From contig CM106586.1 of assembly GCA_048013815.1 (NCBI GenBank), forward strand, positions 20,646,001 through 20,710,000: a DNA stretch of 64,000 nucleotides. Direction: 5' to 3'. Below, piece by piece: positions 1 through 23,584 of this stretch. Source of the stretch: Setoptus koraiensis (taxonomy: Eukaryota > Animalia > Arthropoda). Position 1 is the first letter of the stretch. Each line of letters begins with the position of its first letter. A model generated the notes under the pieces. That model made no database searches, was not told where the DNA came from, and saw only the letters and a list, made by a program, of their open reading frames with translations. A program made the position numbers and the translations under genes.

Positions 1-1139
1 TAGTGTTTCCAGCGCGGCGCGCATAATATCGGGCTGTTTTTTGTTGCGGCCGGCGCCCTCTCGGGCGCGTCTTGGGCGCCGCTGTCTTCGGGCCGGCCGC
101 TGGGCGCGTCCGCCGGGGCGGCTGCAGCGGCGGCGGTAATTCCTTATTAACCCAGTTATAGATTTGCCTCATTTCGCGCTGCCCAGTGCGCACGTTGTTT
201 TTATCAAAAAAGCAACTACTTGTCGCCTGGCTACGCACAATTACCAAACACAAAGAAGCGACGGCGCCATAGGATCCGATTTGCGGTTTTGCGCCGGCCT
301 CAATTGTCGCGCTCGCTCCAACGCCCTGTCCGGGGCCCGGCGGCCGGCCGCTCTGCGAGCCGCGCGCCACGACCAGTGCGCAGAGGAAATAAGACGCCTA
401 ACAAGCTCGCCGCTGGGCCGCCCAGCCGGCGAAACGGGCCCGTCTTGGCGGATATTTTTCACTCTGTCTCGGGCCCATTGCTGCTCATTAAGTTGGCGCT
501 GGTTCGCGTGCTTAATCGCGTAGAAACGCGACAACACGCCGCCGCAACCGGCAAAGGCGGCAACAGCGCGCCACCGTGAGCGATATATGGAGTGCGAGCA
601 CACAAGCAGATAGCGCCCCCGACGAGCGTAATGGGCGCCCGCAGCTCGTTGCTGGAGCGAAAGGAAGTCGCCGGAGCGTCTGGGCGTGCGGTGGCCGCTC
701 TCGGCGGCGCTCGGATGCACGAGAACGCGTCGCGGGGCCCAGCGGAACGCGCAGGGCTCGCTGGCTGGCGGCGCAGGGCTCGCTGGCTGGCGACACGGCG
801 CGGCCAGCGACAACATTGAGCGAGCGAGACAGAAATTGAGGCCAGATCGATAGCGCGCCGGATGTCAGTCGTTTCAAGTGGCGCCCACTCGGGCCGCGCT
901 CACATGGCCGCTCGGACGACTGGCCGGCTGGCTGGCGGGCCGACCCGGGCCAAGAACAAGGGCGCCCAGCGGTAGCCTTGTCGCTCGTGTGCAACTTGCA
1001 CAGTGTAAGTGGGCGCGCTGGCCGCGACGGCGGGCGCACTATAGCGCCGTTCGCGACTCGCTAATGACCTATTGCCGTTGCCAGCAGCGGCGGCCGGGGC
1101 CAATTCCCGCTCTCTGCGTCTGCAACTTGCCCGGCCAGC

Positions 1140-1184: not shown

Positions 1185-2478
1185 AGCGATTGCACAAGCG
1201 TGCGACTAGCGGCCAGGTGAGCACAGGTGAGCCAGTGCGCACGGCGGCGCCACTGCCGCGGCACGGCAGAGGCGTCTTTGCTTTTTGCGTTCCAGCGGGC
1301 TCAGCTTTTTTCCATATTGCACACACTATTTTTTTATCTCTTGTTTCAGCGCTACTCACGTTTGCGCTGCTACGCAACGTTACGTAACGTAACGCCGCGC
1401 TGGCATGCAGCTAGCGCGACGTTTAGCGTAATCTGGGGCGCGCGCGCGCGCGCGCCTCACACACAACACAAACAAACGATTGCAATCATGGAGCAATCAG
1501 AAGACGAGCCTGATCAGGCTGCCCTCCCCCCGTCCCCCCGCAACTGCCCGACTGTCACTTGCGCCCCACAGTCAGCTGACACGGGCGCCGCAATAGTGTG
1601 CGGCTGCAATAATTTCTTTTTGGGGCCCCTTTTCAATGGCTGGACAGGATTTATTGTAATTGCAGCTATTCCCGGCTGGCTGCCTGGCTGGCAATGAACA
1701 AGGTTGGCTGGTTTGTGTAAAACTGGCTGTTACGCAACCGTCTCGTGCTCGCTGTCTGCGCTCGCTGTTGGCGCTCATTGATTCGGCACAATCTCTGACA
1801 CATCAATTTACAATTTACAATTAAAATTACAATTTCAGCCCCCGCTCAAATCCCCGAGCTCATTCAGGTCACAGAGCAAGCTAACAACGCACGCCTCTGA
1901 CAACTCTGCCCATAGGACACCCGTTTGGGCACGACACCACCAACCAGACCCAATGGATATTCACTAACGCCGCATATCTAGCACTGGGCTGCATTTGAAT
2001 TTAAAAATTGCAGCTCGTCGACCCGTCCATGGATATGATGCTCCAATTCAATATCCAGTGGATATCCATGGATATCATCGGCCATCCGCTCGGGCAAATC
2101 CATTGAATGGAGCTTCAGTTGGCCCAAGTATAAATAAATACTGAAACGTCAACTTTTGGGCTCGTGCGGTGTCTGCCGCGATCAAAATTGGTCTGCAGAT
2201 CGAGAATTGTAACGACCCCTGGCGGGCGTAGATTCATCTGGATATCCATGCATGCCAAGTCGGTGCCAGTGGTGTCTTCTCTCTCGAATTTATCGCTGGA
2301 CAATCGCGCGCATTGACTCAAATAATTCTAAACAAAGCTCAAATTTAATATCTGGCTAGGACATCAATCGAACGTGTACCGGTCAGGCCAGCCACTCGCT
2401 TGAAATCCGCATAACAGGCTGTTGTTAACAGCGGTGAAGGCAAGATGTCTTTGGTTGTGCGAATGGCTTCGCTCCGCG

Positions 2479-2526
2479 AAAACATTTGATAAAAACATCT
2501 GATAAAAACATCTGATAAAAACATTT
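2479..2526. repeat. 13-bp tandem repeat (AAAAACATCTGAT) x~3.7
   Basis: Directly visible tandem units. Confidence 0.8.
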
Positions 2527-3259
2527 AATTGCCCATGAGTGTGGCACTAGAATAACGGCAATTTCGATGCAAACGCACTCACGCACAAATAGTGAAAATT
2601 TCTTCGAGTCGACATTGGTTTTTCTTGGAACAATGTAACGATAGTTGTTCGTTGTTTTCGTTTGGAATTTTGCGTGCCGCTAAGCGCACTGATCTTGCCA
2701 CACACACAATCCAATCGATTGGCTGAATGAAAATAATTTGATATAATAACATTTGATTGGCTCGTGCAGCACAATCAGCACTGTTGTGAGACGATTACAT
2801 TAGACGAGAATATTGTAAACGCCGCGTGTTAGCCGGATAAAGCAAACAACGCGCTCGCTTCGAACGCGCACACTTACCTTCGTTATTGCGTCATCAAATT
2901 GCTGTTTATTTTTTGCACTGTTGTCGGCGACACCGCGATTGATTGTTGTTGTTTACAAGTGTTTGCACTATTCATGTGTGGATTTATTATTATGAAGTTG
3001 TTTTATATGTTATATGCATCAACAACAACACTTTGCTAATTGGTGCGGCCGATGGCGGCATCGAGTGGCCGATCGTTGACCACTGAGAGAAGAATATTTT
3101 TTCTACTTCTATTGCTGGCTTGCATGGCACTGGCACGTTATCTAGAGACAGACAAAGTTATATTGTGTGTGTGTATGTGCATAGATTGATGTGATACGCA
3201 ACGTGACGTAACGGTCGTTGATTGGCAAATTTTCTAATTTCTAATTGACGTTGCCACCG

Positions 3260-3380
3260 TTGTCGTTGTTGTTGTTGTTGTTGTTGTCGTCGTCGTCGTT
3301 TGTATATATCATGTGTGTGTGTGTGTGTTGGTGTGTGTGTGCGTGTGTGTGTGTGTGTTGGCGTGTGTGTGTGTGTGTTG

Positions 3381-3421
<41 letters not shown>

Positions 3422-3425
3422 TGTG
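3260..3425. repeat. Compound (GTT/GTC)n and interrupted (GT)n microsatellite
   Basis: Directly visible; explains the spurious His/Thr and Cys/Val ORFs at 3158-3578. Confidence 0.95.
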
Positions 3426-3979
3426 TGATAATAATAACAACAACAATAGTTCTGGCGAGCGCATAAATATAAATAAAGCGTCGTAAACAACGTTGTTTGC
3501 TGGTATGTGATGAGGCCAGTCAGATGAGATGATCAGCAGCGATGTGAGAGGAAAAAATTCCAATGCTGTTGGCCCCATTCATTGCGTGCACACACGCACA
3601 CGCACGCACACACTCACAGTAGACCATAGCGATGCAACGATGACACAATCGGCCATAGAGAGTGCGCCAAACTTTTCGTGCGCCAGCGCTTCTATCTGCG
3701 AAGCACAATGCGAGCCGCTCACCGCGTTGCCCAGCAAGCAACGCGGGCCCCAGCGCGGGCCCCAACGCACACTCACCCGCCAGAACAAGTCCGCAAACCG
3801 AGAAGCTTCCGATCGTGATATGATGAGACCAGATTTCAAATGTGTGCCCTTGTGCCGCCTAGGTCTTTATGCCGTCTAGATCTTTATGCCGCCGAGATCT
3901 CACTCAAAGTATCTTGGCACTCACTTCCGACCTATTCGACCAATGAGCTTAGGACAGAATTAGCTCAGGTCGAACGACA

Positions 3980-5116
3980 TTAATGCTCGCTCTCTCTTGA
4001 GACATATAATTTTGCATTTTTTTTGGGGCAATTTATTAATAAAAAATAAATTATTAATAGTTGTATGATATGAAAATATCGATATTGTTCAGTCTGGCGC
4101 CATCTGCCATTATCTGTTTTCATTTCATAAGCTCGTGATATGTTAACACCGATAGTGGCTGCCCCTCGCGAACAACACTCAAATGTCTTGAATAATGTGT
4201 GGCATTTTTTGTAAAATTGTATAGCTTTTTCATATTCTCTATTGGAATAATATACACTGGCCATATAACTGTTTGCATAGGCACTCAGATAGGCAGCATC
4301 CTCGACTAAGGCTAAGTTTTCACTGAACGATGTAGAAGCTCGAGAAAAGTCTTCGTTTTGCTGCGCTATCATGCCAAAATTGCACAAGGCCTGACTTTTA
4401 CCTGTTCTATCACCAATTTCTGACGCCAAGTCCAGCTGCCTTTGGAAGCAATTCTCTGCCTCTAGGAATCTGTTTGTCAATCTGAACGTGTGACCCAAAC
4501 CACCGGAAGCTCTCATTTCATAGATTTTACCTTGTCTGCCTCCCAATCTTTGTGCCATCTTGATTACCTGCTCACGATAGGTTCTGGCCTCTTCGTATTT
4601 TTTGTTCTTTGTAGCCAAGAACGCCATGTTTGAATTGGCCATAACAAGGTTAGTTTGACATTCCTCATGGCGACTGATCAAGCTGGCGCTGGTCAATTCA
4701 GAATGATATTCTTCAGCTTTGTCATACTGTCCCATCAGGGTGTATATGTGGCACAAACAAGTCAATTCGCGACTCAGCGCACTGTTGTTATCGCCAGCAA
4801 CATGTTGCTGTTGCTTAATTAATTGTAAGCATCTAGTAAGGCTGAGTAGGGCACTGTTGGGATCATTTAGCTAGACATGGATATGGCCAAGTGCATTTAA
4901 GGCTATAATCGCCTGCTGGGCATTGCCTGTGATTTTCATTGCCAACTCGAGCTGTTTCCTATGAGCCTTGAGACTCTCTTCATAATTCTTCAGAGTATAA
5001 TAGGCAAAACCAAGATTGCCAAACACTCTACATTGTCCATTGAAATCTCTAATGAGTATTTGTGTCTCCAAGTCCTCTTGCATATATTCGATAGATTTAT
5101 CGTATTTTTTCAATGA
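3980..5116 (-). pseudogene. TTC28: TTC28-like TPR-repeat gene fragment with one in-frame stop
   Basis: ORFs 4871-5113 and 3980-4765 are in one frame, separated only by TAG at 4873-4871 (..ALGHIHV*LNDPNSALLSLTRCLQLIKQQQHVAGDNNSALSRELTCL..). KSIEYMQEDLE / GQCRVFGNLG / HRKQLELAMK / EMRASGGLGH / QRQLDLASEIGDRTGKSQALCNFG follow the TTC28 TPR array as recalled. An AG acceptor sits at 5118-5117. Homology fades near 4130 and no CHAT domain follows. Confidence 0.75.
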
Positions 5117-5914
5117 CTAGGGACAACAAAATCGGCGGTTAAGAATTGAGAAATTCGGTTCTCAAACTAACGAAACCTACGGTTTCTCGTTCTTTTTTTT
5201 CGGTTCTAATTCACATTGATATGATTCGTTCATCATTTTCGAAGAGAAATGAATATCTAGTTGTAAGTTGTAACAGTCAAAAAAAAAAGAGAGCTATCGA
5301 TCTTAGCGAACAAGGAGGCGCTGGGTGAAGCAATTTGAACAACAACACAATCAAAGATTGTGTGCTGGTCACTTCAACTGATCGTCTGTCACGGCAACAA
5401 CAGCACACTTACGATACAATTTGAAAAAAAAAAACGGTTTTCAAGCATAAAACATATGAAAATCGGCGTTTTCGGTGTGAACAAATACGTCTCAAACGAC
5501 GTATCTAGTTGTACTATGTTGCCCTACATATTTTCAGGACTCTACTCGTTGTGGATCGGTTTTTAATCGATTTCGTTTTCCCTAGATATCAGTGTTCAAG
5601 TAATTGTTGCCGCTTTTTTTCTTACTATTATGATCTCTGTCCGAGTAAGAGGACAATGAGGAACACTTTCGATTTTTGTCGGAGTGACATTGCTAAATGA
5701 GTGTCGATGTTGGTGTTGTTTCTTTGCCTTTTCGCATTGCAATCTAATAAGACGGCTGATATTTAAATAACCGATTCAGATCTCTGAGTTTCGTTGTAGT
5801 CTCACCGGGATTGGCTAAGCGGGATGTCCATAGAATGAGGTCAAACAACTGGCGACAATGTGATTACAACTGATGATCATTGATGATATAGATGATATGT
5901 CACTTTCTCTGTAT

Positions 5915-7012
5915 TTATCTTTGATAATTTTGGCCCAGTTGTCGTCTGAGAAACCTTTCAATCCAGGCCATCAATTCAGTTACCTTCGGAAATGTGGTAT
6001 TTCCGTTGTGTCCGTCTTCACGATGACAACCTGAACGAGAAATGATACCATAGACTTCCCATCGACCATTTCGGACATATAAGCCCGGTCCCCCCGAATC
6101 ACCGCTGCAGGCTGAACGAGGCTTGCTCGTAGGAGATGTTGCACAAAATTCAAATATTTGACTGATCCAAGCATCATGCCTCTCGCAATGTTCCGGAGAC
6201 CGGATTGTCACAATGGCGGCCCTTGTTTTAGTTGTTCTGGTTGGCCTGCCGCCTCCGTCGCCCATAAGTCCCCAGCCAGCTATAGTGATATTAGTGCCAG
6301 GGTCTAGATGGCCAGGATTTTCACTGGCTGTTCTCGCGGGTGGCAAGCAAGCGGGTCTCACATTATTTGTCCATTGCAACGGCTCGTTCAGTTTGATCAA
6401 TGCTGCATCCTGGGATGGGTGAAAATCAATAGATAAATCTTGTAGCACTTGATCTCCATCATTTGTTGATATATCGTAGACACCAGCGAAAATTTTAGTG
6501 TATTTTGTGCCTTTCAAGCAATGGGCAGCCGTTAGTATAGCTTGATCATGTATGATTGTGCCGGCACAATACCGACTTTGTCCATTTACAAGTTTTGATT
6601 TTAAAAACACTAACCAGGGGAAAGCACCCCGAGAGGCCTCCTCGCCTCCGATAATTCTTTTCGACGGCTTATTCGGTATCCATTTATCACCAACGGCATT
6701 GGGATTTATACCACACTTGACATGATCATCTCTACGTTTCTTGGCCTCCGATTGCTGTGATCTCAAGTATCTACCCTCTCTCGATGGCTTCAATTTTTCT
6801 CTCTCTCGTTTGTTTGTCTGTTGCTGGGATACTGGTGACTTGATATTTTTTTCTGATTCAAAAAATTTCAAATCGCCACATTCCGCTTCGTCCGTTGGCT
6901 GTAACTGTTTGAAAGCACTTGTTGCTAAATGTTCATCAGGACCCAGAACAAAAATAGCCAATGCAACACATGATGCTACATACACAAGTGCTCGCACTAG
7001 CAAGGGAGCCAT
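5915..7012 (-). CDS. Secreted S1A (trypsin-fold) serine protease, single exon, 365 aa
   Basis: Signal-peptide-like MAPLLVRALVYVASCVALAIFVLG from ATG 7012, activation site KR|IIGG, catalytic motifs TAAHC, DAALIKL and GDSGGP, pro-region linker Cys (CGINP). Confidence 0.93.
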   Translation of the reverse strand: MAPLLVRALVYVASCVALAIFVLGPDEHLATSAFKQLQPTDEAECGDLKFFESEKNIKSPVSQQQTNKREREKLKPSREGRYLRSQQSEAKKRRDDHVKCGINPNAVGDKWIPNKPSKRIIGGEEASRGAFPWLVFLKSKLVNGQSRYCAGTIIHDQAILTAAHCLKGTKYTKIFAGVYDISTNDGDQVLQDLSIDFHPSQDAALIKLNEPLQWTNNVRPACLPPARTASENPGHLDPGTNITIAGWGLMGDGGGRPTRTTKTRAAIVTIRSPEHCERHDAWISQIFEFCATSPTSKPRSACSGDSGGPGLYVRNGRWEVYGIISRSGCHREDGHNGNTTFPKVTELMAWIERFLRRQLGQNYQR

Positions 7013-7829
7013 CTCGTACGACCTATTCCAATCTCTTGAGATGTCTGTCTGCTTGTCTATCTTCCAAGAGTCTCTCCGTCGACAAATCAATCTAATCTCC
7101 AGAGTTTGTATGTGAAATCAAAGTTTCGTGATTATTTGGGATAGTTGATGTTTTTGAAAACAGCTCAACCTGTGTCCTGCGCCACAAGTCGATCAAAATT
7201 AATGTGTAACTTGATCAGCCTCAAGTCAAAAGAGAATAACCAGTCTGACGATCACATTGCTCCATATGATGGATAGAATACAATAATAATAACACGTAGA
7301 TCTCACCGTCCGGCGAGCAATTCTATTTCTGACTCAGAGATAAGTACTCATCTCATTAATCGCGTATGAGTCGCTAGCTGATGGGTCGATCATGTGTCGA
7401 AACTAGAGATGCCCATGGATATGCATGTTGAATTTCGAACCCTCGAATAAACTAGATATGCAAGTCCAACCTTAGATTTCAAGTTCTAGAGTGTCGAACA
7501 AATCCATCGATAGGTTCAAGAGAGAAGATAGAAGCTTCCGGATCCGACTGTCACTTCCTTCAAAACCATGATATCCAGATGGACAGAGCGGGCGCCCAAT
7601 GGATCATTACTAGGGAGAACATAGTCGGTAAAGCAAACAATCAATCACAATCAAAATCACTACTGGCTCTAAGATGGCCAGAGGAGGTGAAAACTCCACT
7701 TGAGGTAAAATTTTAGTCTGCTGTGAATGCATGGTGACAGAAACTCAAAAACGTGTTCTTGCTTCTAATTTCGCCTTTCGCTATACCGAATGAGATGCAG
7801 CAAGCTGATTAGCTCAGCAGGATCAGTGA

Positions 7830-8015
7830 AAATAATCTAGAGCACAAGATGAGACCTTTTGGTGGCGAGAGCCCGAAAATTTTCAGGTCACTGTTTTTAA
7901 TCATACCTGTATGATGTTGATGAAAGCTTCCCTTTATTCTGGTAGAATTTGTTTTCAAGATCCGAATCAATCTCGGTGATTTGCTCATTTACAAAAAAAA
8001 AATCTTAGGTTCGAC
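7830..8015 (-). pseudogene. 3' fragment of a paralogue of the orphan secreted protein at 12180-13232
   Basis: Translates VEPKIF..VNEQITEIDSDLENKF versus ADPKTFDVTEQIHEIDSDLVNKF in the intact gene, with a poly-T frameshift. The downstream ~80 nt align with 11690-11775. Confidence 0.7.
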
Positions 8016-8016
8016 T

Positions 8017-8620
8017 TCAGATGATATCCATTGCGGTAACATTGTCTGATAATTCCCATTCTGAGTCGGATGGGTCATCACTCGGACCTTGCTTACTTGG
8101 ATCATAGAGGTCCTCAGTGATTAAAGTAGTGTCCGAGCTGAAGCAATCATCTATCTTTTTGCATAGATCCTCGTCGTCGAATTCAAATGTGACATGGCGA
8201 CCTAGTGCATAAATATACAAATCAAATAACAGTAGTAGATTTTTAGTTGTCTTGCGTGGGGTCATTAATGAAATATCTATACCTTGAGACAGACATAAAT
8301 GTATAATATTGATATTCAATTTGGCCACATTGTATGTGAATTGGCAATCAGTTAATAGGTCGCTATTAAAAGTATCGAATGTCAATTTAGCTGGCAATAT
8401 AATATCTAGCTGATAGGCTAAATTATTTATTTACTAATTGTGTTACGCAAGCGAGGCAAGCACTAATGCGAAAAGCAGCATTTCTTTCGCCCAACTGAAC
8501 CAATGAGGCCGGCATCATGTCCTTGTGATCGTTAATCCACAAACTGTAGGCATTGTAGTCTCCGCTACTTGGTAGCCAAGGTTCAACAATTGATTGATTA
8601 GTCATCTGGTGCTGAGAACT
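8017..8620 (-). pseudogene. ATG14: ATG14 (Barkor) C-terminal fragment, frameshifted
   Basis: PWLPSSGDYNAYSLW...NAAFRISACLACVTQLVN(K)/LAYQLDIILPAKL...FTYNVAKLNINIIHLCLSQGI...TTKNLLLL...LGRHVTFE matches the recalled ATG14 C-terminal half. A 4-nt duplication (AAAT) near 8421-8428 shifts the frame and creates TAA. Confidence 0.8.
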
Positions 8621-8699
8621 ACTAGAGAAGGTCAATAGTGGCGATGTTTCCATATTTAACGGACCCAAACCATTGTGTTTGTTGAGCTCTCCAATACAT

Positions 8700-9128
8700 G
8701 CCGAAAATATAGAAGTCCAACACATAATTAAGGCATTGAGTATCATACTTAACCAAATCATCATTCTTAATCTGCCAGATTTCAGGTTGTTGGAAGTTCC
8801 CAAGTTTGATTTTTGTAAGTAGATCATACATACGGACCGATCTGTCTTTTTGGTGGGTGAGCCAATCTTCTAAAATATTGAATGATTTCATCTGGGGTCC
8901 ACCGGGGAATTGTTTGTCCTCGAGAAACTCACATAATTCTTTGTAGCTTAGTAGCGCCAGAGTAACATCCGATATGTCATAGAAATTTTTCAACATGAAC
9001 TGCTTTGTACCTTGTGCCACCTCATAGTTGATGGATGATAGCTTGTCGAAGAGGTGAGTATAATTGTGAACATTCATTCTCTCCAACAAAGAAGAAGCGC
9101 ATATAAATTTTAACTGGCGCAGCTTCAT
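8700..9128 (-). pseudogene. BACK-domain fragment of a BTB-BACK-Kelch protein
   Basis: QFMLKNF...LLSYKELCEFLED...SFNILEDW...RMYDLLTKIKL...IKNDDLVKYDTQC fits the BACK consensus (NF..V..EFL.L..EEL..LL...VFEAV..W...R..LL..VRL...D.LI....C). No BTB domain upstream and no Kelch repeats downstream. Confidence 0.65.
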
Positions 9129-10422
9129 TTTTAGCGCTTAATTTTAATTATAAGCGCTTAATTTTAATTAAGTAGCTACTGGGGTAGTGATGATGGATAC
9201 GTTTATTCACGTGACTATGTAATCCTATGGAGGTTTGACTTAGTCAAAGGACCTCTCAGAGTTTGATGGTCACAATTGGAAGTTCGGTGGTAACAATCCG
9301 AACTTCGGAATTGAAAATTCGAATTTCTGATGATAGTTTCAGGTCCTTAGCTCTTCTTCTTCGGTGAGCAGCAACTCTTTCTCTGTTACACCGTCTTCTG
9401 TAATCAGCCAGTAATTCACTGGCATCAATATTATCCAGAGAAACCCAATCCACTTCATGATAGCCAGTCCATTTCACTAGATATTCTATCCCATTTCCGA
9501 CACCCGTTCGACGATGATCGAGAATGATGTCTATCTCGAAATATCCTCCTTCTTCTTCAGCATCATCATCAATTATAATTATTTCAAAATTTTGCTGTTC
9601 TAATTCAGCATTTTCCGGTAGTCCATCTGCCACCCATCTTGTTAAAATTTTTCAACAAATGAAACACCTTTTAACCGGAGAATTTTGGAAGGAGAAACTA
9701 GCCGGCATGCAGACCACACATGCATTATGTTTGCATGGTGAGGTCATCATCAAATTGTCGGCGAAAGTTTCTTGACAAATGGATTATTCGGTCGTCATTT
9801 TAATAAATAGATGATAAGAAACAATAGATGAGCAATCTGTTAAATAAATGGATTTTTCTAAATGATAGAAGTGAATTCCAAAAAATGATAATAGCCAGTA
9901 ATTGATGAATAGTAATGAATTAAATGCCAATTTAAATAAATATCGAGAACAGAATAAATGATTGTAAATTTTAATGATAATGAATGGTTAAATAAATACC
10001 AATGGAAATAGATATGAATGACTGTTGGATTTGAGTGTCTAAATTGATAATGCTAAGATAGAGAGAATCAATAAGATCTGTCCCGAGACAGTAGATGAGA
10101 TTGATCTCAGACGATTTAACTCCTCGCGCAGACCGATTTCATTTTCACGCACTGTACTTCAATGAACGAGTTGAGATACGATTGAAAAGTTTTTTTTTTC
10201 CAAGAAGAAATTCATTTGAAAGCCACCAAACTCGCACTGTCGAACAGTCTATCTATGGCTATTATTACTACGTGATACACATGTTAACCGACTATTCTGA
10301 TCTGACAGGCATAGATGTTCATCTCTGACATGGTGTCACATACTCGCATCCATATTCCAACGATACTTGTCTATTCAAAAAATTAAGCGCTCGAGATACT
10401 GACAGAATCAGTATCACTTGTT
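9129..10422 (+). mobile_element. Putative non-autonomous Helentron (HINE/DINE-1-like) element, ~1.3 kb
   Basis: 13-bp subterminal inverted repeat AGCGCTTAATTTT (9133-9145, repeated at 9153-9165) / AAAATTAAGCGCT (10379-10391). It is followed by the stem-loop GATACTGA-cagaa-TCAGTATC (10395-10415) and ACTTGTT. A T-run lies at the left end, no target-site duplication is visible, and the right end recurs at 23519-23584. Confidence 0.6.
9256..9798 (-). pseudogene. RING (C3HC4)-chromodomain fusion gene with two in-frame stops
   Basis: From ATG 9798 a single frame reads MTTE*SICQETFADNLMMTSPCKHNACVVCMPASFSFQNSPVKRCFIC*KILTRWVADG... (stops at 9786-9784 and 9654-9652). An acidic linker follows, then the chromodomain YFEIDIILDHRR...EYLVKWTGY...DWVSLDNIDASELLADY and a basic tail. 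Confidence 0.75.
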
Positions 10423-10460
10423 CATGAAAAATCGATCTTTTTCATGAAAAATCGATCTTT
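10421..10460. repeat. 20-bp direct duplication (TTCATGAAAAATCGATCTTT) x2 at the element's right boundary
   Basis: Directly visible. Confidence 0.85.
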
Positions 10461-10680
10461 TTTTGGTGCTTTCTTGATGGACTCTCTTCTCAATAGATCT
10501 GTTTCTGTCTGAGATATAGCGCCTAATCAACAAGAGCTTGTTATCTCTAGATTTGTTTATCCTATCGACGTCTACGAGGGTCTTGTTGTATTCGTATTTT
10601 AGTCTCATGGAGCTTCTTTTCTTGTTCATCATATACATCTTTGAGTACAATTCTTGCCGGCTCTATCATCGACGCCCCTC

Positions 10681-11007
10681 TCAACCTCGATCCATTTGAT
10701 TGAGCATATAATGTTGACCTTCTCTCAACTTTTCTATGATGTGAAGCACACCAACGTGTGCTCTACCTACAATCATCTTGGACCGGCTATGCCAGGCCTC
10801 GGCACTGTTCTGGGTTCGAGGCAAACCGAGGTCAACCAGCTCGATAACAGACCAAAACTTGGATCCCAATTTCGGTGACCGGCGGTTACGTGATGAACCA
10901 CCAACAACATAATTACGCCGAAACCATTGAATTAATTCATTTGCCTCAGCTACAGGAAGATCACAAGCTAAATCTTCAAAAGCGTCTTCTATCTCTCTTG
11001 GCTTCAA
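10681..11007 (-). mobile_element. Mutator-like (MULE) transposase C-terminal fragment
   Basis: LIQWFRRNYVVG...FWSV.E....GLPRTQNSAEAWHSR....VGRAHVGVLHIIEKLREGQ resembles the MULE C-terminal pattern (YF..NY.G...W.V......PRTNN..E.WH..F...V...HP.I...I..L..EQ). No DDE core in the window. Confidence 0.7.
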
Positions 11008-11465
11008 GAATGCAAGAGCAATAATTTTGCGAATAGTGGTCGCACATGATTGCGATGAAACATACTTTCTATCAAATATTCGTTATATGAAATGTACGTT
11101 GATGAAACGAGCCAGACCTGCCTATTCATATATCAGTAGTACATCTCATGGCAACACAACAACAACAAAAGAAGAAAAATCTAGAATAGAAGAGCTACAA
11201 CAACATCTCTCTCAACCGACAAACGAAGAGCGGTTGAGTAAACCATTGGCCGTAAAAGTTGCCAACCACTATGTCAAATTCTTGGAGGATATGATAAAAA
11301 AAAATCTTACCATCAAACAAATCACGGACTGAGTAGTCCCTCGCCGGGACCTTGACAGAATGCCGTCAGACGATGTAGTCGACGACAATCACATCGCCTG
11401 GAGGCTTATAGATACAGATTATCAAAATCTTCGTGAGTTCTCGAGGGAAAAACAGTTTGAAACGA

Positions 11466-11675
11466 CAGATTGTATCATCGATTACCGCTAAGCTGAGATT
11501 CGAAGAAGCATGCAACGTTGATTCGCACGAGTTTCAAACTAATCTGGTACCATACCATCGTATTCATTTTCCACTTGTCACTTGTGCGCCTGTTATCTCT
11601 GCGGAGAAGGCCTACCATAAGCAATTGACAGTATCTGAGATCACCAACTCCTGCTTTGAGCCACAAAATCAAATG
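11466..11675 (+). pseudogene. Alpha-tubulin internal fragment (about residues 233-302), degenerate
   Basis: [70 protein letters not shown], with substitutions at near-invariant positions. No N- or C-terminal tubulin sequence on either side. Confidence 0.9.
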
Positions 11676-11684
11676 GAGAGAGTC

Positions 11685-12179
11685 CAAAGTGAAAGGGAGC
11701 ACACAAAATTTAGTGGCAACAGGCTGAACATTTTGAGGGCACTGTTTTGATTCATATGATATTGATGAAAGTTATATTTAAAGGCTTTTTTTTCGCCCAT
11801 GAGAGTTCATGATTGAGATTGTCCATAATTGTCTGGAACCAAAGTTCAATTCCGCTTGATTCCGTGTGGCCGGAATTAGTTTACAAGATCCGAGTCAATC
11901 TTGATCACTTGATGAATATGAGAAGCATGAGTCGTGACATTTGAAATATTTCCAGAGACTTTCTTTTAGAAGGCAGTTTTCTTCCATCAGTCCTGCATAA
12001 ACAGATGGAAAATTGCCGCACGAAACATTTCACAGTTGTTCAATGTTTTTATTCATATGATAGAAATACAAGCTCCACATCATGCTTTTATCGCTCATTG
12101 GAGTTTATGATTCAGATTGTCACTACCTGGATGGAAGCAGCGTTTGATTCCGAATCGGAACTTCCGATTGATTCAGTGC
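11685..12179 (-). pseudogene. Decayed downstream continuation or second repeat of the orphan secreted-protein gene
   Basis: Contains a second NVTT..HIHQVIKIDSDLVN*FRP motif (~11870-11940) and a hydrophobic tail ([24 protein letters not shown]) homologous to 7830-7930; multiple stops. Confidence 0.5.
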
Positions 12180-16343: not shown

Positions 16344-16964
16344 GATGAGAGATTTAACAACTGAGAGGATTTCGCACAATATTGAAATATTAAAATAAAT
16401 TGTCAGCAAACTGAGTGAGTGAGCTCGGGCGGCCAATGCAAGCGGATATTGGCGCAAACACTCACTTATATATTGCTGCCAGAAGCCGTCAAGTTTGTCT
16501 AGCTAGGCTCGGAATTGACAAAAACAATGCGAGTTCATTGCTAGGTTTTCATCTAGCGCATTCGTCGTAATTATCGGTGTTTATTAGGCGATGACTCGCA
16601 AAAAAGGCAGCCAGCCCATGAATGAGCAAGTGGCAAATTAAATCGTCGGTCGCCTTGAAATCGGCATCATCGCGATCATTCACTCAGAGACTCTGAGTGA
16701 GAGTTGCCGCTCGGAACTGTGTACTGCCAATTATTGTAATACGATCGCCGAAAATAGCTGCCTCATTCTGATGACACTTTGAAGGGCACTGCGGCGAGTT
16801 TCGACGAGTTTTGACAAGTTTGGCGAGCTTGCCAGTCAATTGACAGCAATTGTATCGGCGAGTCTTTCGTTTGATTGTTCGACACCAAATCGGTGGTCTG
16901 CCTGAGCCTGACAAACAAACAAAAACGACAATAGTTGTGACGCCTACGCTTGCAATTGGGACCA

Positions 16965-19900
16965 CTAGCTCAGCGAATTGGCCGACTCTAGCCAGTAGGT
17001 GTCCATCAGGCCCTTGCCCTTGACGTCGATCTGGCCGCGCGGCTCTATTATGAGGCCTTGAACATTGTCGAGGAGACACTTTGTTTCGTGTGACATTTGT
17101 ATCTTGTTGGCCTTGCTGTTTGTTTGCATTCGCGACGCAACATTCACTGTGTCGCCGATGAGACAATATTTGGGCCGCTTGAGGCCGACGACGCCCGCGC
17201 ACACCGAGCCCGAATGGAGCCCGATGCGCACGTTGAACATTATGTTGGAGGCGTGCTGAAATTGGAAGGATTTCACCGAGTCGCGAATGCACAACGCCAT
17301 TCGGGCTATCTGTTCGGCACTGATGCGTCGCTGATAATCCCGCAATCGCTCGTCCATCAGTTGCGATTGCAAATCGTCCTTGGCGCTGTCCATCGACTGC
17401 TGCTGCTGCTGCTGAGCCGGCCCGATGGCCACAGAATCGCGCTGCTCTCGCGTTGGCGCGCCAAAATTGGCCGGAAGTTGCTGCTGTTGCGCCTGACCGT
17501 CGGCACTGGCCTGCTTTGGCTGACCTCGCAAACTGCCCGTCAGTGTCGTCTGGCGTCGCCATTTTCCACTGGACGTGGACTCTTTACTTCCGCTTTTCGA
17601 TTGTGTCCGGTTCTTTCGCAACAGTACCCGCCGGAATTTGGCCGTCCGGTTCGCACCGGCGCCGTCGGCCGCCGTGTCGTCCGCCTGCTGCTGATCTTGG
17701 CGCTGGCCCGCGTCCTCGAACTGATCGTCGCCGTCAAAACTGGCCACTTGTTGCAGTGATTGCTGCTGGCGCGGCTGTTGCGCTTGCTTGGCGGGCGCCG
17801 CCTGCGATAACGATATGCCCGACGCAATGAGAAACTGATCGACGATGGTCTCGATTTTGATCACATCGAAACTGTTGATGATGGAATCGAAGCGCGAATA
17901 CAGCTCGTTGAGCAGCTCGACCAATTGATTTGGTTGCATCATTCTGGCAAATTGCTCGAAACCGATTATGTCGCTGAAGAATATTGTAACCGCTTCAAAC
18001 GATTGCGGCGTTATTGTGTCGTTTCGTTTCAGCTGATCGGCCACAAATTTCGGTATCAACTTGTACAATATTTCCTCGTTGCGGCGCTTCTCGTCCACAA
18101 TATCGGCGCTCTTTTCCTCCACTATCCGTTCCAAATTGCTTGCATAATTCTGCAACCTGTCCATCATGTTGTCCAAATAGTTCTTAGTGGTCAGTCCGTT
18201 GGTGACGCGCTTCAAACGGGTCTTGATCATGCCAAACGAGGGCCTCTTCTGCGGCTGTTCCGACCAGCAAAACTCCATCAGCTCCATCAGCTCGTGTTGC
18301 GCCTCAAAATGTTTGCCCGGCACCGCTGGCCGCACGGGCGGATTTGTGCCCATTCGCAATTGGTCCAGTATCTCGTCAAAGTCCAGCTTATTCTCCACAT
18401 TGACAATATTTTGCTGCTGCTCTTGCTGGCAGCCGCTAGCCTGATGCTCGGCGTCGCTGTCGCCCGAACGGGCCGGTCTGAACTTGCCGCCGGCCAGCGA
18501 ACCCGAATGAGCGCTAATGGGATCGGCATTCGGCGGTTTGCCCGTTCGGTGCAAATTTGCCCGTATTGTGGGCAGGTCCTGACTGCGCCTGCTGCTGCGC
18601 GCCGTCCGGGACCCGTCATTGCTGCCGACGTGCTGCGACACACTCGACGACACATCGTCGTCCGACGTCTCCCGATCGGCCGCACCGGTATGCGCGTCGG
18701 GTTCCTCTCTCAGCAACATGCTGGCGCTGTCCGAGTTGAGATTGGATTTTTGCAACGCGCGCCTGAGCGACCGCTCGTGCTTGCCCTCGCCGTCGGGCAA
18801 CCGCGTCGGGGCGGCCATTCTGTTGGCGGACGGACTCAGGTACGAGGTAGGCCTCAAACTGGAGCCCGGCGTCACAGAATGCACGCTGCCCGTCACAGAC
18901 AAGTTGCCGCCGGTCGACTCGGCCCCCACTGAATTCTGTCGCCGGCTCGCCATAATTTTGCTGTTGCTCGCTGCGGCCGACTTGAGCCTCTGTCCGTTTG
19001 AGGCAAGTTGTACGGATGCGATGTTTGTGCCGTACGCAAACGGCCGGGCCCTGGTGATGATTTCCGACAAGATTATGCCAAACGAGTAAATGTCGCCCTT
19101 TTTGCTTCCCTTTAGGTGCGGATATCGCTGACGCAAATGCTCGGGCGCTATCCACAGATATTTGCGACTGGCCGCATTGTCCTTGGGCAGCGCTCTCGAT
19201 TGATTGGCGCTAGGCTTGTTGTTGCTGATACAGTGGTCCTTGCCGACTATCCGACTGACCGAGTCGCCGATGGCCGACATTGTGTCGGCGTCGCGATGAT
19301 TGCCGTTGGCGATGTCGCGCTGGGGCCCGGCCGACCGGCCGCGATGATTCACGGCCGACCTCAGACTATCCACTTGGCCCACCGACGAGCCGGGCCGCTC
19401 CGTGCCCATGGCGGCGGCCCCCTGGTCGCACAATGTGGCGCCCTCCTCCACCGATTGGGTCTGTTGATACAATTTGTGCAGGCCAAAATCTGTTATTTTC
19501 ACCGTGAATCTGCTGTCTATTGTGCAATTGGACGACTTGAGCCGGCCGTGATAATCCAACAGGCTGTTATGTATGAAATTCATGCCGTTTATGATGTCGC
19601 CAATGATGGAATATTTGAAGGTCCAGTCCATTTGCATGTTGCCGTTGAGCAGAATGTCCTGCAAGCTGCCCTTGGCGCAGTATTCGCTGACCACACAAAT
19701 GTGTTCCGTTTCAAGACACAAACCGATGAATTTGCACAAATTGTCGTGCACCAATTCGCGAATCGCCTTCAGCTCAATGAGAAAATCGCGGCTTATGTCG
19801 ATTTTGGTCACATTCAACGGCTTCACCAGCACCACTTGATCGTTGAACTTTGCCAGGCCCACGCCAACCATTGTGACGAAACTGTTATCTGACCGGATGA

Positions 19901-23518: not shown

Positions 23519-23584
23519 CCAACGATACTTTTACATTCAAAAAATTAAGCGCTCGCGATACTGACATGGTCAGTATCACTTGTT
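23519..23584 (+). mobile_element. Second copy of the Helentron-like 3' terminus (subTIR plus stem-loop)
   Basis: 66-bp block matching 10357-10422: AAAATTAAGCGCT at 23541-23553, hairpin GATACTGAC-atg-GTCAGTATC at 23557-23577, then ACTTGTT. Differences fall in the upstream spacer, one base before the stem, and the loop region; the stem is conserved. Confidence 0.6.

Follow-up and report, generated by a model that had tools for sequence, protein, structure and literature searches.

A probable composite HINE-type element with a captured RING-chromodomain gene fragment in Setoptus koraiensis

HINEs (Helentron-associated interspersed elements), including DINE-1 of Drosophila, are characterised by 13-bp palindromic subterminal inverted repeats (subTIRs), central repeats, a 3' stem-loop, two to five T at their boundaries and insertion into TT (Thomas et al., 2014; PMC4067079). 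Gene-fragment capture by Helentrons has also been reported, and either end bypass or composite transposition was proposed to account for it; Helentron-Cq-32A of Culex, for example, carries histone H4/H1 gene fragments in eight copies and has a parent gene of 84% identity, and similar captures by Helitrons in maize and bats are summarised in the same work (PMC4067079). Here we describe an element of about 1.3 kb that encloses part of a RING-chromodomain gene in Setoptus koraiensis (assembly GCA_048013815.1, contig CM106586.1). It lies in a stretch of 64,000 nucleotides (positions 20,646,001 to 20,710,000, hereafter the window), and all positions without a prefix are those of the window. An initial annotation made from the letters alone had proposed a Helentron-like non-autonomous element whose family carries a RING-chromodomain fusion gene, possibly to target insertion or alter host silencing.

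We consider it probable, at roughly 0.72, that 9128-10422 is a composite non-autonomous element of the Helentron/Helitron2 type, that is, a HINE, which holds a captured and truncated RING-chromodomain fragment, was inserted once and was later segmentally duplicated. Genome searches covered the two chromosome-scale pieces of the searchable assembly, C1 and C2, of about 24 Mb each and 48.7 Mb in total, the window being C2:20646001-20710000. The parts of the element are as follows.

9128-10422 (C2:20655128-20656422), the whole element, HINE-type, about 1.3 kb
9128-9248, plus strand, 5' end, 98-99% identical to the 5' ends of copies L047, L048 and L049 ("type B")
9128-9132, plus strand, T-run TTTTT at the 5' end, followed by AGCGC
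9127-9146 and 9147-9166, 20-bp tandem duplication holding the 5' subTIR
9133-9145, repeated at 9153-9165, plus strand, 5' subTIR AGCGCTTAATTTT
after the 5' subTIR, within 9128-9248, palindromic CTTAATT..AATTAAG
9256-9342, plus strand, one copy of an approximately 86-bp tandem-repeat unit, matching many tandem units in other copies at 77-93%
9343-10196, minus strand, captured fragment of about 854 bp, its right edge placed to within 7 nt either way inside a T-run at 10190-10199
10197-10422, plus strand, 3' part of the "type A" subfamily, 95-96% identical to copies L004 and L005 and 90-92% to type-B ends
10379-10391, 3' subTIR, pairing with the 5' subTIR
10395-10402 pairing with 10408-10415, 3' hairpin with an 8-bp stem
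after the hairpin and ending at 10422, 7-nt tail ACTTGTT

The termini carry the evidence for the class of the element. Both 5' subTIR copies form a perfect 13-nt inverted repeat with 10379-10391, built around an AGCGCT core, and by a rough estimate chance would supply about 0.01 such pairs in 1.3 kb. The 3' hairpin folds at -6.4 kcal/mol (z = -2.9), and one of the 200 shuffles against which its stability was judged folds equally well. Apart from the broken captured gene the element has no open reading frame (ORF), and thus no transposase coding capacity. The inverted repeats and stem-loop that had been noticed initially are therefore confirmed, and the assignment to the non-autonomous Helentron/HINE type agrees with every structural feature that could be tested; the 5' end moves by one nucleotide, from 9129 to 9128.

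Using the 1294-nt stretch of the window as a query, we found 222 matches in three groups, which correspond to the first 120 nt, to query positions 128-214 (the 86-bp unit) and to the last 135-160 nt. The core of the query (215-1079) matched two places, itself and one on C1. Twelve complete elements of 0.9-3.3 kb were excised and their ends lined up: the boundaries coincide, the flanks are unrelated and there is no target duplication. All 12 start with TTTTTAGCGCTTAATTTT and finish with ...AAAATTAAGCGCT, the hairpin and CACTTGTT. The subTIR motifs stand at equal distances from the ends in at least 12 other copies, the 3' boundary is coincident in 13 copies, and on the 5' side the flanks of 13 copies diverge immediately before TTTTTAGCGC. 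Most family copies have T-rich junctions, and the terminal hairpin (GATACTGA) recurs among them with varying loops. In L051 two elements are joined head to tail, with a 3' end, a T-run and a 5' end in succession. Family copies contain tandem arrays of the 86-bp unit and of a unit of about 62 bp, one unit being kept in the window element. The second right end that had been seen 13 kb away from the element is a solo, truncated member of the same family.

23519-23584, plus strand, solo truncated 3' end of 66 nt, with subTIR, hairpin (23555-23575, 9-bp stem, loop different from that of the window element) and tail ...CACTTGTT, then T

We conclude that this is a well-delimited HINE family, new for the annotation of this genome. 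The 20-bp unit that contains the 5' subTIR is itself tandemly amplified, twice in the window, twice in L047 and at least five times in L049 (C2:588000-589400, around its positions 927-1023); slippage or repeated initiation readily occurs at the 5' end of the family.

A paralogous empty site on C1 provides the most direct view of the insertion. The flanks of the element (8835-9127 on the left, 10438-10484 on the right) match adjacent stretches of C1:13411919-13412258; the left match spans 298 nt with 92.6% identity and the right match 47 nt with 97.9%. There the sequence is contiguous, ...CA TTTTT CAGGAAAAATCG..., and the window has the same CA, then the element from TTTTTAGCGC to CACTTGTT, then CATGAAAAATCG... 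This site, which lacks the whole cargo-bearing unit, shows that the boundaries 9128 and 10422 are exact, that the target was a T-run and that no target duplication was made, the last as had been noted initially. It also shows that, relative to the BACK-gene sequence, all of the 1.3 kb is a single insertion, with the fragment in it. Judged from the empty-site paralogue, the insertion point lies 5 nt upstream of the ATG of the BACK ORF. Two features adjoin the element here.

8622-9127, minus strand, target BACK-domain ORF, Pfam BACK 26.3 bits, ATG at 9128-9126
10423-10462, plus strand, 20-bp tandem duplication in the right flank, CATGAAAAATCGATCTTTTT twice, single at the empty site

The cargo consists of about 400 bp of 5' flank and the first 150 or so codons of a RING-chromodomain gene, cut on its 3' side at 9343 by the tandem repeat; family homology restarts to its right at about 10197. 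The minus-strand frame runs from an ATG (9798-9796) through three codons, a TAA, 43 RING codons, a TGA, a short conserved linker, an acidic run, the chromodomain and a basic stretch into the repeat unit. The RING piece and the chromodomain piece were searched separately, and the stop-broken frame was never joined or read through. The domains were judged against the Pfam cut-offs for zf-C3HC4 and Chromo.

9655-9783, minus strand, C3HC4 RING finger, PF00097 at 22.7 bits against a cut-off of 21 bits, E = 9e-5, seven of eight zinc ligands, in register with those of the paralogues
9786-9784, minus strand, TAA stop, aligned with the first zinc-binding Cys of the paralogues
9654-9652, minus strand, TGA stop, aligned with an Arg of the paralogues
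9541-9651, minus strand, acidic linker
9391-9540, minus strand, chromodomain of the HP1/CBX/cpSRP43 type, PF00385 at 33.4 bits against a cut-off of 25.1 bits, E = 4e-8

The antisense order of RING, acidic linker and chromodomain, as well as the two stops, had thus been read correctly in the initial annotation, and both domains exceed their cut-offs, the RING marginally. In an alignment with cpSRP43 and HP1-type domains the cage positions Y..W..Y are retained in the chromodomain. The basic tail stands in part: a basic stretch is present, and the last 29 codons of the 125-amino-acid ORF (9342 down to 9256) are read-through into the 86-bp repeat unit of the element and lie outside the gene. The gene copy in the window is truncated at its 3' end, because the longest paralogue continues for about 100 residues past the point at 9343 where homology ends, and the chromodomain half has no ATG.

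Other origins for this frame were considered. A recoding of the stops (by an alternative code, selenocysteine or a tiny intron) was rejected, since the TAA aligns with a Cys, the TGA aligns with an Arg and the reading frame continues unaltered past the two stops; the second could be accounted for by a change from CGA to TGA. The chromodomain was also considered as a remnant of a Gypsy (chromovirus) integrase. This was rejected because the RING and the acidic linker lie directly upstream in frame and no integrase signal was found, and the order RING-linker-chromodomain is shared by four paralogues.

With a TAA in place of its first Cys codon, the window RING would have been a RING once and is presumably not one now, and the cargo as a whole, judged from its sequence, appears to be a dead passenger pseudogene fragment. 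Because the fragment is 3'-truncated, twice stopped and without an ATG for its chromodomain half, a role of the window copy in targeting or silencing is not credible. More generally, we regard as very improbable the idea of an element family equipped with a working one-chain methyl-lysine reader and ubiquitin ligase for target choice or counter-silencing. The scores of both domains, the kept cage residues and seven of eight zinc ligands argue for it, as do small RING-chromodomain relatives elsewhere that adjoin mobile-element genes (see below). The two in-frame stops are, however, common to both copies of the cargo, the truncation by a repeat unit and the missing ATG affect the same reading frame, and no other family copy seen contains the cargo: among more than 200 family matches it occurs here and in one segmental duplicate only, with which it has 5.3 kb of left flank and both stops in common. 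This does not agree with a rolling-circle family that carries the gene. Gene-fragment capture by Helentron-type elements is already known, and this is an ordinary capture and not a functional cargo of the family. Both the "RING-chromodomain gene" and the 125-amino-acid ORF at this place should be entered in annotations as a fragment of a pseudogene with repeat sequence fused to it.

The second cargo copy deserves attention. In the 48.7 Mb the cargo DNA matches itself and C1:7248555-7249717 only, and the latter belongs to a longer block, C1:7242956-7249723 (L036/L040/L041), that corresponds to window positions 3785-10427 over at least 6.6 kb. Its left 5.5 kb is 99.7% identical; the element is 97% identical, a lower value that is due mainly to one extra repeat unit and a 10-bp indel. 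The duplicate has both stops of the window copy and differs from it at one coding position, 9651, so that a comparison of non-synonymous and synonymous substitution rates (dN/dS) between the two copies, which had been suggested, is uninformative. This copy is part of a segmental duplication, not a second transposition. On the left it is bounded by a 500-N scaffold gap. On the right the homology ends exactly at the 3' terminus of the element and the other half of the BACK gene is missing, so the window locus is the older arrangement. An edge placed so exactly hints that a rolling-circle event may have stopped at the 3' end of this element; however, the gap hides the left edge of the duplicate, and within 24 kb upstream of the element there is no family 5' end. 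The block could alternatively reflect an ordinary duplication or an assembly issue.

RING-chromodomain sequences are present elsewhere in the genome. Six-frame searches of C1 and C2 with both pieces, followed by a family profile, revealed five independent loci: the window locus (with its duplicate) and four on C1.

C1:2009819-2010199, paralogue
C1:21678393-21679007, paralogue
C1:7402877-7403461, paralogue
C1:21674956-21675701, paralogue

In the alignment all five loci have the order RING, LTxW..G[ML]P linker and chromodomain. The four further paralogues are all damaged: one has a TAA inside the chromodomain, one a frameshift, one lacks the first Cys pair, and one lacks two ligands and has an insert of about 290 bp. 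These four lie outside HINE ends, though HINE pieces are nearby, so that an association of RING-chromodomain copies with these termini fails for four of the five independent loci. We also considered the paralogues as part of a larger repeated unit and rejected this, as they are low-copy and have nothing but the gene and scattered repeats in common. The best-preserved paralogue (in L034, C1:21677379-21680483) is an ORF at 865-1611 on the minus strand of that piece, a 271-amino-acid open frame without the first Cys pair. It is followed by a separate chromodomain-only ORF of 109 amino acids (521-850, minus strand) whose stop is abutted by a HINE 3' end, and which has an 81%-identical copy at C2:6056239-6056531.

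Within the element itself, similarity to the two subfamilies changes along its length. The first 120 nt are of type B, as listed above, and from about 10197 onwards the sequence is of type A, including a 55-nt stretch (10208-10262) that is confined to this type. Type A has its own array of 62-bp repeats and a more diverged 5' end. The window element is therefore a chimera, with the 5' end and one repeat unit from one subfamily and the 3' region from another. Type-A copies have about 220 nt extra at the 10262|10263 junction, including an inverted 81-nt copy of the 3' region, which are absent from the window element. In L004, L005, L012, L014 and L017 this inverted copy sits about 37 nt upstream of their own 3' region (e.g., L005:1226-1660), which gives a long foldback just ahead of the terminal hairpin.

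These features would be explained if rolling-circle transposition, of the composite or the end-bypass kind, had acquired the fragment at a donor locus. One element's 5' end would have been used together with the 3' terminator of the element next to it, and the intervening DNA would have moved with them. The composite would then have inserted once, upstream of the BACK-domain ORF, and the fragment would do nothing for the element, as a passenger pseudogene. A different composite, starting from a family 5' end upstream of the present element, is unsupported, as no such end was found within 24 kb upstream of the element (the first 9 kb of the window and 20 kb before the window were considered).

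The surroundings of the element bear on another explanation. Window positions 3781-12179 are a patchwork of gene fragments with nameable parents, and the BACK fragment lies within a copied Atg14-like gene, the parent of which is a 513-amino-acid ORF at C1:11.97 Mb (L079).

3781-5117 and 5584-5771, match to C2:20773746-20775977, inverted, 82-90%
5915-7090, trypsin ORF
8024-8689 and 10456-10638, match to the Atg14-like 513-amino-acid ORF at C1:11.97 Mb, 91-95%
8835-9127 and 10438-10484, match to the BACK ORF at C1:13.41 Mb
10681-11007, MULE-transposase-like ORF

It could thus be proposed that the element was assembled in place. A plain HINE, or two partial HINEs of different subfamilies, would have come first, and the fragment would have been stitched in by ectopic repair or template switching, as in the formation of the mosaic around it, such that the cargo-bearing unit never transposed. 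The element being a two-subfamily chimera with an internal deletion fits this, as do the surrounding 8 kb, which join TPR, trypsin, Atg14-like, BACK and MULE-like gene fragments with parents elsewhere, and the lack of a second independent insertion. Yet the element is bounded on both sides by exact canonical termini of one orientation, in a T-run whose flanks are contiguous at the empty site. Assembly in place needs an insertion and a later internal replacement that spared both ends; a composite needs one transposition. We therefore hold assembly in place to be unlikely and prefer capture followed by a single insertion.

Several observations nevertheless count against capture by a transposing composite. 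The search of the 48.7 Mb yielded no independent second insertion of the cargo-bearing element that differs in both flanks, and the empty site therefore also fits a fragment that entered an already inserted element in place. The patchwork around the element indicates that some other stitching process has been active here. No close parent gene of the cargo exists in the searched sequence, where the best paralogue has 47-54% protein identity, and family termini were not found around either of the two ORFs with a Helitron Rep domain described below. All of these searches are bounded by the two chromosome-scale pieces.

The Rep domain occurs twice in the 48.7 Mb, in the following ORFs.

C2:613418-618433 (ORF 2418-7433 of L058, C2:611000-620999), minus strand, Rep and PIF1-helicase ORF of 1671 amino acids
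L059 (C2:638000-647999), ORF 1370-8977, plus strand, Rep and helicase ORF of 2535 amino acids with a C-terminal Ulp1 (C48) protease

Either may be an autonomous rolling-circle element. The first has a weak, sub-threshold C-terminal match to Exo_endo_phos, an APE-type endonuclease (E = 2e-4), and is directly followed by type-A-like tandem repeats; it is a possible partner of the HINE family. Because of the missing family termini, the link to an autonomous Helentron is suggestive only. The other genes near the element are animal genes with long, nearly intron-free ORFs, namely a receptor guanylate cyclase, cohesin SA/STAG, Hook, trypsin and a TPR protein.

The architecture of the captured gene had been called unfamiliar in the initial annotation. 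It is indeed unusual, and it is not unique to this genome. A word-index protein search with the longest open paralogue (248 amino acids) returned nothing at E <= 0.001. An exhaustive profile search of 1.84 billion protein representatives at the same threshold gave 110 matches, mostly plain chromodomain or plain RING proteins. Five small proteins among them (149-196 amino acids, E = 3e-8 to 2e-5) are collinear across RING, linker and chromodomain and have a basic tail, and a sixth matches over the linker and chromodomain only. An ESM Atlas look-up gave no usable match for a public RING-chromodomain protein.

Of the four public homologues whose contigs are informative, three adjoin mobile-element genes. 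One lies at the end of a 17-kb Polinton-like contig that encodes an rve integrase, a protein-primed polymerase, an adenain-like protease and an A32-like ATPase. Another is 82 bp from the end of a Copia polyprotein gene and beside a PHD-chromodomain gene, in three contigs from different samples; long terminal repeats (LTRs) were not detected around it. The third is 370 bp from a hAT transposase gene, and on another contig of the same gene a lyase gene is on the other side. The fourth is on a 297-kb contig with no mobile-element gene called nearby. The Polinton-like contig (L083, 17076 nt) encodes three RING proteins, at 13-864 (minus strand), 2920-3927 (plus strand) and 16531-17052 (plus strand). 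Two of these genes are at opposite ends and face outward, the right-hand one being the RING-chromodomain homologue; long terminal inverted repeats were not detected on this contig.

Proteins that combine RING and chromodomain in one chain thus exist; public data contain very few of them, and their genes tend to occur in the neighbourhood of mobile elements. This raises the question of the donor, which may have been an accessory gene of another mobile element or of an endogenous virus and not a host gene; the reading of the element as a composite HINE would be unaffected, as the donor alone changes. The degenerate paralogues in this genome would then be what is left of such accessory genes. All five loci in this genome are degenerate and lie in repeat-rich areas near HINEs, there are no close relatives among the 1.84 billion proteins, and the Polinton-like, Copia and hAT neighbours point the same way. 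In contrast, the paralogues are low-copy and have no larger shared repeated unit, the protein-primed polymerase gene that marks Polintons was not found in the 48.7 Mb, and neither LTRs nor terminal repeats could be demonstrated around the public genes. One public copy neighbours a lyase gene and another is on the 297-kb contig, and proximity to transposable elements may merely reflect residence in heterochromatin-like regions. On balance we find such a donor rather unlikely, though less so than assembly of the element in place.

A broader idea is that the genes for small RING-linker-chromodomain proteins of 150-270 amino acids form an as yet undescribed accessory class, which accompanies unrelated mobile elements or is repeatedly recruited by them. 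We consider this distinctly unlikely and offer it as speculation. If true, a class found beside Polinton-like, Copia and hAT genes, and here within a HINE, would couple recognition of methylated histone tails to ubiquitin ligation; it could steer integration into heterochromatin or blunt silencing, and the window copy would be a dead relic of it. The occurrence of the architecture near mobile elements is a lead for a survey, which the window locus cannot establish.

The composite HINE offers a clean case, backed by an empty site, of a Helentron-type non-autonomous element that has captured part of a gene. Such captures are to be expected, yet they are sparsely documented outside Culex and Phytophthora. 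Like HINEs and DINE-1, the family is protein-less and has 13-nt palindromic subTIRs, a central tandem array, a short stem-loop that follows the 3' subTIR, and T strings at both boundaries. It likewise inserts into T-runs without target duplication, clusters and forms head-to-tail arrays. The window copy differs from them in being a two-subfamily chimera in which one repeat unit and a gene fragment replace the array. The subTIR AGCGCTTAATTTT was not found in the paper on HINEs (PMC4067079), in its supplements or in the other literature text searched. In common with Helentron-Cq-32A and the maize and bat Helitrons, a non-functional gene piece lies between intact rolling-circle termini. Unlike Helentron-Cq-32A, this locus is a single insertion with a segmental duplicate, and has no close parent in the searched sequence.

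The predicted protein also has recognisable counterparts. The best solved-structure matches of its chromodomain are HP1/CBX1/CBX5 and cpSRP43 (E = 8e-9 to 1e-4), with the cage positions and a C-terminal helix motif kept; those proteins lack a RING, and the window protein lacks a chromoshadow domain, ankyrin repeats and a Pc box. UHRF1 is a single-chain histone-mark reader and RING ligase, which reads through a tandem Tudor and a PHD and not through a chromodomain, and is far larger. In PRC1, the CBX reader and the RING1/2 ligase are on separate chains. Compared with UHRF1 and PRC1, the RING-chromodomain family described here is alike in concept, as it would combine a reader with a RING-type ubiquitin ligase, and differs in its form: 150-270 amino acids that comprise a RING, a short linker, a chromodomain and a basic tail.

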